Source of the DNA: Macrostomum lignano
Lineage: Eukaryota
Reading direction: 5' to 3'
Assembly (NCBI GenBank): GCA_002269645.1
Contig: NIVC01001249.1
Location: forward strand, 1-64,000
DNA length: 64,000 nucleotides
Both the position numbers and the translations under genes were made by a program. Positions within the stretch are counted from its first letter, which is position 1. Every line of letters begins with the position of its first letter. The notes beneath the pieces are model-generated. The model did no database searches. It saw nothing but the letters and a program-made list of their open reading frames with translations, and was not told the origin of the DNA. This document shows, in pieces, positions 488 to 27,178 of the stretch.

Positions 488-751
488 GAGGCCAGCAGTT
501 TTCTGTCCGCCAATGCAACCAGGCACTCGGTCATCCGCGACTTTGCCAGCCGCCTGTCGCTGCTCTGTCCGGGCCGTCAGCGGCTGCTGAAGTCGAGGAT
601 CGCCGAGCTGAAGACCAGCTGGGACGCCGTGGCCTTCGCTGCCGCAGCCGGTGCCGCGGTGCTTGCCGCCATTGACGCGGTGCGTCTGGTAGCGTCAGGC
701 TGGCCACCGAGAGGAGGAAGGCGGAGGCGAGGCTGGAGATTGTGCTGGACG
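488..751 (+). CDS. Probable upstream exon of the klarsicht/nesprin-like gene (spectrin-repeat-like helices)
   Basis: Acceptor ttgtcag|GAG at 487/488 and donor ACG|gtgagt at 751/752 (phase 0/0). Reads EASSFLSANATRHSVIRDFASRLSLLCPGRQRLLKSRIAELKTSWDAV..., resembling spectrin-repeat helices B/C (L..L...W..). Linkage to the 12801 exon is inferred from phase and fold, not proven. Confidence 0.5.
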
Positions 752-775
752 GTGAGTGCTTCATAGTAGCTGTGG

Positions 776-2858
776 ATTGGGATCAGGGTGAATGGGGATC
801 AGGGTGAATGGGGATCAGGGTGAATGGGGATCAGGGTGAATGGGGATCAGGGTGAATGGGGATCAGGGTATATGGGGATCAGGGTAGATGGGGATCAGGG
901 TAGATAGGAATCAGAATAGATTGGGATCAGGGTAGATGGGGATCAGGGTAGATGGGGATCAGGGTAGATGGGAATCAGGGTAGATTGGGATCAGGGTAGA
1001 TTGGGATCAGGGTAGATGGGGATCAGGGTAGATGGGATCAGGGTAGATGGGGATCATGGTAGATAGGAATCAGAATAGATGGGATCAGGGTAGATGGGGA
1101 TCAGGGTAGATGGGGATCAGGGTAGATGGGGATCAGGGTAGATGGGGATCAGAGTAGATGGAAATCAGGGTAGATAGGAATCAGAATAGATTGGATCAGG
1201 GTAGATTGGGATCAGGGTAGATGGGGATCAGGGTAGATGGGGATCAGGGTAGATGGGGATCATGGTAGATAGGAATCAGAATAGATGGGGATCAGGGTAG
1301 ATGGGGATCAGGGTAGATGGGGATCAGGGTAGATGGGGATCAGGGTAGATGGAAATCAGGGTAGATAGGAATCAGAATAGATTGGGATAAGGGTAGATTA
1401 GGATCAGGGTAGATGGGGATCAGGGTAGATGGGGATCAGGGTAGATGGGGATCAGGGTAGATGGGGATCAGGGTAGATGGGGATCAGAATAGATGGGGAT
1501 CAGGGTAGATGGGGATCAGGGTAGATGGGGATCAGGGTAGATAGGAATCAGAATAGATTGGAATCAGGGTAGATGGGATCAGGGTAGAAAGGAATCAGAA
1601 TAGATTGGGATCAGGGTAGATGGGGATCAGAATAGATGGGGATCAGGGTAGATGGGGATCAGAATAGATGGGGATCAGGGTAGATGGGGATCAGAATAGA
1701 CGGGGATCAGGGTAGATGGGGATCAGGGTAGATGGGGATCAGGGTAGATGGGGATCAGGGTAGATAGGAATCAGAATAGATTGGGATCAGGGTAGATGGG
1801 GATCAGGGTAGATAGGAATCATAATAGATTGGGATCAGGGTAGATGGGGATCAGGGTAGATGGGGATCAGAATAGATGGGGATCAGGGTAGACGGGGATC
1901 AGAATAGATGGGATCAGGGTAGATGGGGATCAGAATAGACTGGGATCAGGGTAGATGGGGATCAGGGTAGATGGGGATCAGGGTAGATGGGGATCAGGGT
2001 AGATAGGAATCAGAATAGATTGGGATCAGGGTAGATGGGGATCAGGGTAGATGGGGATCAGAATAGATGGGGATCAGGGTAGACGGGATCAGAATAGATG
2101 GGGATCAGGGTAGATGGGATCAGAATAGATGGGGATCAGGGTAGATGGGGATCAGGGTAGATGGGGATCAGGGTAGATGGGGATCAGGGTAGATGGGGAT
2201 CAGGGTAGATAGGAATCAGAATAGATTGGGATCAGGGTAGATGGGGATCAGGGTAGATGGGGATCAGAATAGATTGGAATCAGGGTAGATTGGGATCAGG
2301 GTAGAAAGGAATCAGAATAGATTGGGATCAGGGTAGATGGGGATCAGAATAGATGGGGATCAGGGTAGATGGAGATCAGGGTAGATGGGGATCAGGGTAG
2401 ATGGGATCAGGGTAAGATAGGAATCAGAATAGATTGGGATCAGGGTAGATGGGGATCAGGGTAGATAGGAATCATAATAGATTGGGATCAGGGTAGATGG
2501 GGATCAGGGTAGATGGGGATCAGAATAGATTGGAATCAGGGTAGATTGGGATCAGGGTAGAAAGGAATCAGAATAGATGGGGATCAGGGTAGACGGGGAT
2601 CAGAATAGATGGGGATCAGGGTAGATGGGGATCAGAATAGATGGGGATCAGGGTAGATGGGGATCAGGGTAGATGGGGATCAGGGTAGATGGGGATCAGG
2701 GTAGATGGGGATCAGGGTAGATGGGATCAGGGTAGATAGGAATCAGAATAGATTGGGATCAGGGTAGATGGGGATCAGGGTAGATGGGGATCAGAATAGA
2801 TGGGGATCAGGGTAGACGGGGATCAGAATAGATAGGGATCAGGGTAGATGGGGATCAG
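776..2858. repeat. ~17-bp G-rich minisatellite (GATCAGGGTAGATGGGG) with GGAATCAGAATAGATT variants, ~2.1 kb
   Basis: Direct inspection; boundaries approximate. Confidence 0.95.
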
Positions 2859-3491
2859 AGAGTGTGATTAGTTATTAAGTACATTGAAAATTCAAATTGG
2901 TGTTGACATGGTGGATTGAAGTGAAAAGCAGATTTAAGGTTCGCGGAGAATGGAGAAATAGAAAGTGGAAAACACTGTCCAAGACATTCACCTCATCCGA
3001 AACATTGCGAAAACTTTTTTCTTCACAGAAAAGCAAAATCAGCAATAAATTATATCATTTTTATCCCCATCAGTTTTCGTTTTACGGTCTGTCATACACC
3101 CGAAATCCAAAACTTCGCGTGACTCATATCCTTAAAAACTTTCTGCGCAATGGTAACGGGACCTCTGCTACTAGGAGAGGTCAAACTTTCCTCCCTTAGA
3201 TGTCGAATGGAGGGTTTCTAGGGAAGAGAATTTTCTGGATTTTGCCAGCTGGGCAGCAGGGGATGGATAGTCTTGCCATTGGAGGAGGTTGGAGCTTGCG
3301 ATATTCAGACAGATAGGCAGAAAATTGGTTTCTCGGAAAGGTGGGTAGGGCGAGGCTGTAAAATGGGATTTCCGTCTGGTTGCAACTGGGAAGTGGCTTC
3401 TTGGCGGTCCGCCTGGTGGGTGGCGGAATCAAATTTTGGTTTCCAGTGTGGAAGCCTGGGCGCTGCGGCTGATTGTTATCGCATCTAGTTC

Positions 3492-4157
3492 TCTGTCTGT
3501 CTGTTTGTCTGTCTGTCTGTCTGTCTATCTGTCTGTCTGTCTGTCTGTCTGTCTGTCTGTCTGTCTGTCTGTCTGTCTGTCTGTCTGTCTGTCTGTCTGT
3601 CTGTCTGTCTGTCTGTCTGTCTGTCTGTCTGTCTGTCTGTCTGTCTGTCTGTCTGTCTGTCTGTCTGTCTGTCTGTCTGTATGTCTGTCTGTCTGTCTGT
3701 CTGTCTGTCTGTCTGTCTGTATGTCTGTCTGTCTGTCTGTCTGTCTGTCTGTCTGTCTGTCTGTCTGTCTGTCTGTCTGTCTGTCTGTCTGTCTGTCTGT
3801 ATGTCTGTCTGTCTGTCTGTCTGTCTGTCTGTCTGTCTGTCTGTCTGTCTGTCTGTATGTCTGTCTGTCTGTCTGTCTGTCTGTCTGTCTGTCTGTATGT
3901 CTGTCTGTCTGTCTGTCTGTCTGTCTGTCTGTCTGTCTGTCTGTCTGTCTGTCTGTCTGTCTGTCTTAGTGTCTGTCTGTCTTAGTGTCTGTCTGTCTGT
4001 CTGTCTGTCTGTCTGTCTGTCTGTCTGTCTGTCTGTCTGTCTGTCTGTCTGTCTGTCTGTCTGTCTGTCTGTCTGTATGTCTGTCTGTCTGTCTGTCTGT
4101 CTGTCTGTCTGTCTGTCTGTCTGTCTGTCTGTCTGTCTGTCTGTCTGTCTGTCTGTC
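3492..4157. repeat. (TCTG)n microsatellite
   Basis: Direct inspection; source of the SVCL/LSVC pseudo-ORFs. Confidence 0.97.
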
Positions 4158-25972: not shown

Positions 25973-26138
25973 CTGTCAATCAAATCGAGAGTCTCTGAGC
26001 AGGGCGCACGCCTCCATGCTGGAGCTGGAGCGGCTGCTCTGCCGTTGCGAGCGCCTCATCCAGGAGGAGCTGCACCGACTGCGGCAACTTGAGTCAGCCA
26101 GCAGCTTCGACAGGGAGACCGCGGCGGCGGATTTAGAG
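25973..26138 (+). CDS. Klarsicht/nesprin-like protein, exon (helical)
   Basis: Acceptor ccatgccag|C (phase 2) and donor GAG|gtgagc (phase 0); SMLELERLLCRCERLIQEELHRLRQLE. Confidence 0.75.
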
Positions 26139-26160
26139 GTGAGCAGCTGCTCAACTCAAT

Positions 26161-26528
26161 ACTGACTGACTGACTGACTGACTGACTGACTGACTGACTC
26201 ACTGACTCACTGACTGACTGACTGACTGACTCACTGACTGACTGACTGACTGACTGACTGACTGACTGACTGACTGACTGACTGACTGACTGACTGACTG
26301 ACTGACTGACTGACTGACACACTGACTGACTGACTGACTGACTGACTGACTGACTGACTGACTGACTGACTGACTGACTGACTGACTGACTGACTGACTG
26401 ACTGACTGACTGACTGACTGACTGACTGACTGACTGACTGACTGACTGACTGACTGACTGACTGACTGACTCACTGACTCACTGACTCACTGACTCACTG
26501 ACTGGCTCACTGACTGACTGACTGACTG
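26161..26528. repeat. (ACTG)n microsatellite
   Basis: Direct inspection. Confidence 0.97.
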
Positions 26529-26698
26529 ATAAATTAATCTCTGCTTGAACTCCGGACCTTCAACACGATTATAATTTTTAAATTTTTTGTGTCCGAGTAG
26601 ATAATTTCTAGTGTTCGCCACATACTACTACTTTGGTGATGAAAAGTCTGTTTTCTATACATATCGGGAAATTCAACTCCACTCGCCCTTCTGCTTAG

Positions 26699-27178
26699 GA
26701 GGCAGCCAAAAACGCGGACTCGGCGGCCTCCCTTGTCAGCCACTGCTCGGCGCTGCTCGACGCCTCCCTCGGCGCCAGCCTGACAGCGTCGGCGCACGCG
26801 CGAATTGACGAACGACTCGCGTCGGCGTCCAGCAGCTCGGCGAGGCTGCGCCGTCGCTGCCGACGTCTCCGCCTTTTGGTGATTCGGGCCACGACATGTA
26901 CGGAGCTGCCGACGCAGCCGGAGGTCCGTGCGGAGCGGCTCGGCCGGCGCTGGTGCGCCCGTATGGCGGCCGCTGCGGCTGTGGCTTCTCTGCTGCTTCT
27001 TCTGCTGCTGCTGCTGTGCTGGCTGGCTGCTCTGCTGGCCAACCCGGCTGGAGCTCCGCCGGCTTCGGCAGCTCCCGTGACGGCCGACTGGGGCTGCCGG
27101 CGCGGCTGGATGGGCTGGCTGGTGTCCCGCCTGCTGCCAGCGCTGCGGGAGACCCGACCGAATGGCGCTCCGTTCTGA
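26699..27178 (+). CDS. Klarsicht/nesprin-like protein, last exon: single TM plus KASH-like luminal tail
   Basis: Acceptor ttctgcttag|GAG (phase 0). RRWCARMAAAAAVASLLLLLLLLLCWLAALL (TM), then ...WGC...SRLLPALRETRPNGAPF*, comparable to KASH ends such as [12 protein letters not shown]. The nine exons 12801-27178 total 3195 nt in frame. Confidence 0.72.
   Translation, partial: EAAKNADSAASLVSHCSALLDASLGASLTASAHARIDERLASASSSSARLRRRCRRLRLLVIRATTCTELPTQPEVRAERLGRRWCARMAAAAAVASLLLLLLLLLCWLAALLANPAGAPPASAAPVTADWGCRRGWMGWLVSRLLPALRETRPNGAPF

Follow-up and report, generated by a model that had tools for sequence, protein, structure and literature searches.

The locus studied here raises the question of whether the gene for a motor adaptor lies inside the gene for its own cargo receptor and, if so, whether the arrangement is an accident of inheritance or a functional device. 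Kinesin-1 reaches nuclei through binding of its light chains to KASH proteins, a route that matters in muscle, cochlear hair cells and the nematode hypodermis. In the flatworm Macrostomum lignano, a kinesin light chain (KLC) gene, KLC-a, shares a stretch of 64,000 nucleotides (nt), here called the window (contig NIVC01001249.1, assembly GCA_002269645.1), with a large gene, host-a, whose product resembles KASH proteins in predicted architecture. An earlier note on this DNA had placed KLC-a antisense within host-a or else head-to-head with it. We found that KLC-a is nested antisense inside the host-a intron 5879-12800 and is not head-to-head with its neighbour. The nesting is probably old and inherited, having been copied together with the host in a deep duplication, and the host is predicted to be a nuclear-envelope receptor for KLC. 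All positions are contig coordinates; the window opens at an end of the contig, the first 37,178 bases being identical.

A kinesin light chain gene inside an intron of host-a

By full-length similarity KLC-a is a kinesin light chain. A phmmer search against PDB matched its 484-amino-acid (aa) product to human KLC1 (9pmb_C) with E=1.1e-168 over query residues 13-471. The alignment runs from the heptad-repeat region to tetratricopeptide repeat (TPR) 6, with TPR2-4 nearly identical to those of human KLC1. In KLC-a the N-terminal heptad-repeat region, which in KLCs binds the kinesin heavy chain, is followed by six TPRs, with strong Pfam TPR_12/TPR_10 matches on exons 2 and 3, and a homologue search retrieved 2402 KLC-type matches at E<=1e-100. 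Together with the 484-aa gene that GenBank places at exactly 7705-11300, these matches bear out the complete minus-strand KLC gene reported earlier at 11300-7705. KLC-a resembles canonical KLCs (KLC1-4, Drosophila Klc, C. elegans KLC-2) from the heptad-repeat region to TPR6, but both KLCs of M. lignano end soon after TPR6 and lack the long variable C-terminal tail. A mollusc KLC gene spans 40 kb, whereas KLC-a is compact with three coding exons; the second M. lignano gene, KLC-b, seems similarly compact over the coding part mapped.

The exon model of host-a was rebuilt using splice-site scans and reading-frame bookkeeping. Nine plus-strand exons between 12801 and 27178 join in frame into 1064 aa with a stop codon at the end, all with AG/GT sites, and the translation is 100% identical to GenBank PAA70310.1 (P0001; Macrostomum lignano BOX15_Mlig000061g1). 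The nine in-frame exons with canonical sites described in the earlier note are thereby confirmed, the donor at 16916 (GTTTGT) being the sole weak site of the model. It was also correct that the first of these exons, 12801-13052, opens at an acceptor and not at an ATG, and it contains no in-frame Met. The N-terminus of P0001 reads MTGAERSHCVILLQ|QQEGEF, where MTGAERSHCVILLQ is encoded at 5837-5878, upstream of KLC-a. GenBank annotates the host-a gene at 5837-27178, the coding sequence (CDS) of the window copy beginning at ATG 5837, and this RNA-seq-guided CDS joins 5878 to 12801 across KLC-a. The M. lignano assembly was built from PacBio reads and polished with Pilon, and its annotation combined RNA-seq, processed with StringTie/TACO, and mapped de novo transcripts (PMC5730564). 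The KLC-in-host layout is repeated at a near-identical duplicate locus, L001 (NIVC01002007.1), and a paralogous pair, host-b with KLC-b, is arranged alike. The proposal that a KLC gene is embedded antisense in a KASH-type gene was therefore upheld as to its layout.

The duplicate locus L001 encodes a 1447-aa host protein, P0002, by which the exons upstream of KLC-a were located. Using tblastn, residues 245-335 of P0002 were mapped to 488-751, residues 333-349 to 5623-5676 and residues 348-382 to 5781-5878, followed by the nine exons. Residues 1-244 have no counterpart in the window, since its first position is also that of the contig; the first two coding exons of host-a are located beyond the contig start and are present at the duplicate locus. 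Host-a is likely a nesprin-like, tail-anchored gene of KASH type (Mlig000061.g1), of which the window contains the 3' three-quarters. The features of the two genes are as follows.

7705-11300, minus strand: KLC-a, 484 aa, with three coding exons at 11300-10641, 9195-8955 and 8258-7705 (GT/AG sites)
488-751, plus strand: internal host-a exon corresponding to P0002 aa 245-335, with a 1-nt deletion (tblastn; L001 DNA alignment)
5623-5676, plus strand: host-a exon encoding (D)ICSDLHRVESWLASIT, overlooked by the earlier note (tblastn; AG/GTAAGT sites)
5781-5878, plus strand: host-a exon encoding DTSNRLAAPFSIRSINFPAMTGAERSHCVILLQ, whose donor at 5879 joins 12801 (P0001 N-terminus; sequence reading)
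5879-12800, plus strand: host-a intron of 6.9 kb, phase 0, holding the whole antisense KLC gene (tblastn; annotation)
12801-13052, plus strand: host-a exon after the KLC-bearing intron, part of a predicted spectrin-like three-helix unit and the strongest homology to host-b (BLASTP; structure model and Foldseek)
16687-16915, plus strand: host-a exon with the weak GTTTGT donor, its 3' end ...ILPFS opening the LPFSEDEYEKI island
18133-18828, plus strand: host-a exon beginning (E)DEYEKI, with an alternative in-frame donor at 18692
19404-19887, plus strand: host-a exon with an alternative in-frame acceptor at 19514
20076-20281, plus strand: host-a exon (splice sites, tblastn)
21028-21323, plus strand: host-a exon with two W-acidic-like motifs, DQLWDY at 21078-21095 and LSLWEIDQ at 21189-21212
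24978-25363, plus strand: host-a exon, predicted C-terminal spectrin-repeat-like region (structure model, Foldseek)
25973-26138, plus strand: host-a exon, predicted spectrin-repeat-like region (structure model, Foldseek)
26699-27178, plus strand: last host-a exon, with the stop codon at 27176-27178

The exon at 488-751, previously proposed as a phase-compatible spectrin-like exon of the host, is a genuine host exon, but its phase compatibility is an artefact of the 1-nt deletion. P0002 matched it at 488-688 in frame 2 and at 688-759 in frame 1 (100% and 92% identity, respectively), and DNA alignment with the otherwise identical L001 exon showed that a GGG run at about 686-689 is one G short in the window. 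The intact form is 265 nt long with phase 0->1. The missing G is either an assembly error or the mark of a damaged allele, and it puts the long host isoform of this copy out of frame, which accounts for the GenBank CDS starting only at Met 5837. The direct junction 751->12801 assumed before did not hold, since the exons 5623-5676 and 5781-5878 intervene (tblastn, splice sites read). Two helix-A-like fragments near 3200-3330 and 4440-4570 were also rejected as host exons; both contain stop codons and match neither host paralog.

Two observations concern splicing of host-a. The alternative donor 18692 and acceptor 19514 keep the frame and remove 82 aa, the acceptor context being stronger than that of the 18828/19404 pair, and could give a shorter isoform. 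Another database model, P0127, shows different splicing of exon 24978-25363.

A coding first exon in 11300-12800, which would place the two genes head-to-head, was rejected because the sole good donor there (GTAAGT, 12697) directly follows an in-frame stop. The other way to avoid nesting is an annotation artefact in which 488-5878 and 12801-27178 are two genes wrongly merged, with KLC-a intergenic and head-to-head to the second. In favour of such a merger, exon 12801 has no Met, a first exon without coding sequence could stop at the 12697 donor, and the GenBank CDS of the window copy begins only at 5837. However, three loci have GenBank models with the join across KLC (P0001, P0002 and P0136/P0137), and the independent models P0003 and P0141 of the older assembly make the same join. 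The frame is open across it in both paralog types despite only 30% identity, in BLASTP the one significant segment of host-a against host-b passes straight through the junction, and a predicted three-helix unit spans it (AlphaFold2 (AF2)/Foldseek). A wrong merger is therefore extremely improbable.

Predicted architecture of the host protein and its candidate kinesin-binding motifs

The predicted architecture of the host protein is of the nesprin type, with spectrin-like repeats, a transmembrane (TM) helix and a short tail. The AF2 model of exons 7-9 (mean pLDDT 75) contains two three-helix repeats joined by a continuous linking helix, as in the tandem bundles of about 105-120 aa of spectrin-repeat proteins, and then the TM helix, with helices at 35-59, 68-101, 107-170, 176-208 and 214-250. 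The best Foldseek matches of this model were erythroid spectrin R8-9 (1s35), nesprin-2G (6xf1) and plectin SR7-8 (5j1g), with probability 0.99-1.0 and TM-score (target) 0.45-0.62 but E-values of only 0.04-0.17. For the model around the KLC intron the best matches were utrophin/dystrophin SR1, at low confidence. The TM helix is encoded at 26963-27040 (hydrophobic stretch MAAAAAVASLLLLLLLLLCWLAALLA; the helix is also present in the AF2 model) and is followed at 27041-27175 by a 45-aa tail, predicted to be luminal, that ends ...PALRETRPNGAPF (fuller reading ...ADWGCRRGWMGWLVSRLLPALRETRPNGAPF). Host-b likewise ends in a TM helix, VLILLGCCCCGLLMLLALL, and a 21-aa tail closing with ...SADWQLVSISQPNGAPY. 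Both hosts have the single C-terminal TM helix and the short tail of about 10-45 aa by which KASH proteins are recognised.

In KASH proteins the terminal PPPX motif inserts into a pocket of the SUN domain. The host tails end NGAPF and NGAPY, as compared with NGPPPT in nesprin-2 and nesprin-3 (PDB 4dxs_B, 6wme_B). The flatworm tail keeps the NG before the motif, is one residue shorter than the nesprin tail and shares with nesprin KASH peptides the pattern D-aromatic-x-C ... PxLRxT ... NGxP. Since the C-terminal PNGAP[FY] is common to two strongly diverged paralogs, it argues for function. UniRef names P0001, P0002, P0134, P0136 and P0137 'KASH domain-containing protein', a name assumed to come from another profile than that of Pfam.

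Several results weigh against the identification of the host as a nesprin-like KLC receptor. The profile check proposed in the earlier note came out blank: neither the last exon, the 77-aa tail nor full-length P0002 matched Pfam KASH (PF10541) at E<=10, and Pfam spectrin matched neither P0002 at E<=10 nor single exons. It is the predicted fold, the architecture of the tail and the UniRef name that give the host its labels 'KASH' and 'spectrin-like'. The Foldseek matches have weak E-values (0.01-0.2), and the pLDDT of the N-terminal AF2 model is 57. The tails read GAPF and GAPY, not PPPX, and of the canonical motif only the -1 Pro is kept; a phmmer search of the host-a tail against PDB found no KASH peptide. 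No host homologue outside M. lignano was found by phmmer with P0001 among 1.84 billion representative proteins, or in a word-indexed search. Exon 488-751 of the window copy carries the frameshift described above. Finally, the Trp motifs of the hosts (QLWD, LWE/QWE) deviate from the canonical [LM][ED]W[DE]. Nothing specific on flatworm KASH proteins was found in the literature.

The closest known systems are the kinesin-recruiting KASH proteins nesprin-4 and nesprin-2 of vertebrates and UNC-83 of C. elegans. Like these proteins, the host is predicted to be tail-anchored, with one TM helix, a short C-terminal tail and helical or spectrin-like cytoplasmic repeats, and before its last repeats lies a disordered stretch with a candidate acidic Trp motif. 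Unlike them, it ends GAP[FY] and not PPPX, and has no detectable sequence homology to them, PF10541 being blank and phmmer returning only M. lignano proteins.

The W-acidic motifs LEWD/EWD of nesprin-1/-2/-4 and UNC-83 bind the TPR domains of KLC, and their core is [L/M]-[D/E]-W-[D/E], or the shorter EWD in UNC-83, within an acidic disordered flank (PMC12581424). In host-a the corresponding segments are VDQLWDYS and QLSLWEIDQ, and in host-b they are LDQLWDHY and SHLQWEADQ. Each has a Trp followed by an acidic residue, an upstream Leu and acidic flanks, and the acidic region in which the two Trp islands lie comes shortly before the final spectrin-like repeats. The hosts read QLWD and L(x)WE where nesprins and UNC-83 have LEWD/EWD. 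Because the residue before the Trp is Q or L and not D/E, the segments resemble the W-acidic motif and are not demonstrated sites. Among 12-residue windows compared between host-a and host-b, the best conserved were LPFSEDEYEKI (11/12), GxESGFxSExSP (9/12) and DxDQLWD (8/12), followed by DSxLxWExDQ and EDQSGxDE (7/12 each). The conservation of the W-acidic-like motifs makes a relation of motor adaptor to cargo receptor plausible. The earlier statement that adaptor and receptor are physically linked consequently stands as regards the nesting, and the receptor role is plausible by the candidate motifs.

The single best-conserved island between the hosts, LPFSEDEYEKI, crosses an exon junction (16903-16915 and 18133-18152). 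That it might be a Tyr-acidic KLC-binding motif is a speculative suggestion.

It could also be that the proximity of the two genes is pure coincidence. The host would then be tail-anchored, whether KASH-like or of another kind, but would not bind KLC, and its Trp islands would serve another partner, such as a dynein adaptor or some structural contact. The departure of the motifs from canonical LEWD fits this, as do the presence of 24 Trp in the host, the blank Pfam result for KASH, and the lack of an orthologue tying the host to nesprin-4, UNC-83 or Klarsicht. On the other hand, the two hosts contain 24 and 15 Trp, and both Trp with acidic, disordered surroundings belong to the few that are conserved at about 30% identity. 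LxW[DE] in an acidic flank fits the class as described, the shorter EWD of UNC-83 included (PMC12581424), and spectrin repeats with a TM helix and a short C-terminal tail are the architecture of nesprins. We consider pure coincidence unlikely and continue with the host as a predicted nuclear-envelope KLC receptor.

A second nested pair and the probable origin of the linkage

The second M. lignano KLC, KLC-b (P0051/P0131, 496 aa), is 62.6% identical to KLC-a in a trimmed alignment and lies antisense inside the large gene host-b (loci L003, L004, L006). A phmmer search with P0001 matched the distant host paralog P0129/P0130 with E of about 1e-5, whose exons lie to both sides of KLC-b and on the other strand; at full length, host-b (P0136/P0137) has 1266-1268 aa. 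Overall identity between the two hosts is about 30%. BLASTP gave a single strongly significant segment (E=8e-20) between them, across the exons on either side of the KLC intron, and this intron lies at the same aligned residue in phase 0 in both hosts (VILLQ|QQEGEF vs LHSVQ|AREEEI). Since homologous hosts each carry an antisense KLC in an intron of the same position and phase, host and guest were evidently duplicated together as a unit.

In a neighbour-joining tree the two M. lignano KLCs form one group. Their identity to the KLCs of other animals is about 57-63%, while spiralian KLCs are about 85% alike, which suggests that the split is old and that both copies evolve fast. An intron at GKRx|KY is common to KLC-a (7705-11300) and KLC-b (L006 20430-23185), one at RYE|V occurs in KLC-a only, and one near aa 89 in KLC-b only. 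These differences point to gain or loss after the duplication and also indicate its age. The KLC 5' end lies 1.5 kb and 1.6 kb from the next host exon in the two pairs. The pairs host-a/KLC-a and host-b/KLC-b are each present in two or three near-identical recent copies.

We propose the following course of events, which we hold to be likely. A KLC gene would already have been present in this host intron before a deep duplication in the lineage, and host and guest would then have been copied together to give host-a/KLC-a and host-b/KLC-b. The TM helix and the short luminal tail would hold the host in the outer nuclear membrane, and the tail would bind SUN proteins. Its cytoplasmic part would consist of spectrin-like repeats and a disordered acidic region bearing the two W-acidic-like motifs. 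These motifs may dock in the KLC TPR groove and so recruit kinesin-1 to the nucleus, as nesprin-2/-4 and UNC-83 do. The nesting itself would be an inherited accident, as an intronic gene can hardly leave without breaking its host. For the physical nesting an inherited accident is the most economical explanation; regulatory coupling, via co-expression or antisense interference, is possible.

The alternative is a selected functional module, in which the nesting is retained for coupling the expression of adaptor and nuclear receptor and each KLC is dedicated to its own host. Coupling could act by a shared chromatin domain, by co-activation or by antisense interference that sets the ratio of the products. 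Consistent with such a module, the linkage outlived a deep duplication in both pairs and in the same intron, W-acidic-like motifs have been retained in both hosts and rank among their best-conserved cytoplasmic islands, and the spacing from KLC 5' end to host exon is similar (1.5 vs 1.6 kb). Both KLCs are also unusually diverged against the roughly 85% conservation of animal KLCs, which fits co-evolution with private partners. However, a nested gene will stay in place even without selection. Comparison of the host-a and host-b introns by blastn detected no conserved non-coding DNA, the significant segments all being KLC coding sequence. The antisense orientation excludes a shared transcript, unlike in ChAT/VAChT. 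Only two KLC types were recovered for M. lignano among the matches listed, and these probably serve all kinesin-1 cargoes and not nuclei alone. The KLC loci of the annelid Capitella and the mollusc Pinctada showed no nesting, and no KASH gene lies within 10 kb of them. We regard a selected module as rather unlikely and prefer the inherited accident. A search for the gene identifiers in the expression tables supplementing PMC5816591 did not find them.

A bolder form of this idea, in which the nesting is older than the Macrostomum lineage and the two pairs are private and co-evolving, giving orthogonal couplings of kinesin-1 to the nucleus each from one locus, appears quite improbable. No KLC of another flatworm was among the 120 matches listed.

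Known nested loci give two models for comparison. VAChT is nested in the first intron of ChAT in the same orientation, shares its promoter and 5' exons and is co-regulated with it. The M. lignano loci are alike in that the guest lies in an intron of a functionally partnered gene (here a likely partner) and has been kept over long evolution. They differ in strand: the VAChT guest is on the host strand, whereas KLC-a is antisense with its own 5' end (ATG 11300) inside the intron. Shared exons or a shared transcript with the host are for this reason impossible, and the exon sharing that characterises ChAT/VAChT is absent from KLC-a/host-a. The second model comprises the antisense nested genes OMG/EVI2A/EVI2B in NF1 and F8A in F8, for which no biochemical relation of host and guest is known. 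In these loci, too, the guest is compact and intron-poor, the host is large with many exons, and the guest occupies one of its long introns on the other strand and persists through duplication. KLC-a differs in that it encodes an adaptor bound by proteins of the class to which its host is assigned.

To our knowledge, KLC genes are unlinked to KASH genes at gene scale in animals with nesprin-2/-4 or UNC-83. At chromosome scale, human KLC1 shares chromosome 14 with SYNE2 and SYNE3, KLC3 shares chromosome 19 with SYNE4, and KLC4 shares chromosome 6 with SYNE1. The sharing may be a trace of a linkage group in which ancestral KLC and KASH genes lay together.

The locus places an adaptor gene inside the gene of a probable nuclear receptor, and the pair has been kept through an old duplication with strong divergence of both members. 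It offers a natural experiment on whether a motor adaptor and its cargo receptor become a specific pair by co-evolution, and on whether antisense nesting tunes their relative dosage; since M. lignano is amenable to transgenesis and RNA interference, both questions are directly testable. Two very divergent KASH-like tails (GAP[FY]) that escape Pfam could widen the definition of the animal KASH domain. Even if the nesting is inert, it is a clean case of an anciently inherited nested pair. The gene models were already public, and we found no sign that the relation between KLC and host had been noticed before.

Repeats, mobile elements and further reading frames

Nearly every intron of host-a and KLC-a has its own micro- or minisatellite array, for example a 16-mer x131, a 28-mer x84, (TCTG)169 and (ACTG)92. 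Arrays were located at 775-2858, 3492-4167, 4872-5562, 8350-8881, 9524-10356, 13072-13607, 14341-15131, 15681-16565, 18873-19388, 20327-20932, 21384-23722, 24422-24835 and 26161-26529. They explain most of the size differences between duplicate loci, such as the KLC span of 3.6 kb in the window vs 2.7 kb in L001.

In L006, another intron of host-b holds, in sense orientation at 11125-14832, an intact-looking long terminal repeat retrotransposon gag-pol open reading frame (ORF) of 1235 aa with RVT_1, RNase H and integrase. In the window, remnants of a Bel/Pao-type retrotransposon pol lie on the minus strand at 49440-52362 (DUF5641 E=7e-16; weak Peptidase_A17) and are interrupted by a tandem repeat. 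An ORF on the plus strand at 62134-62859 contains an HTH_32 homeodomain-like domain (E=8e-7) and is probably a fragment of a DNA-transposon transposase. A long candidate ORF at 37296-38862, plus strand, contains poly-Q and poly-Ala and runs into a tandem repeat of 21-nt period (QLQSITDSCSQLQTVAVNYR...); its Pfam matches are repeat artefacts.

Three paralogous ORFs lie on the minus strand at 46378-47064, 52735-54435 and 56929-57819. They have a common N-terminal stretch, ...FR(C/F)(L/M)A(T/I)(F/S)(K/R)P(I/M)(G/K)FRRWLT(R/C)R(F/I)QLC(G/S)F(G/A)VLLLVA(A/S)A..., and the middle one (52735-54435) contains a long Ala-rich insert. One of the three gave a weak match to Srw-type seven-transmembrane G-protein-coupled receptors (E=2e-4, below the Pfam cutoff), and together they are possibly a small tandem cluster of receptor-like genes.

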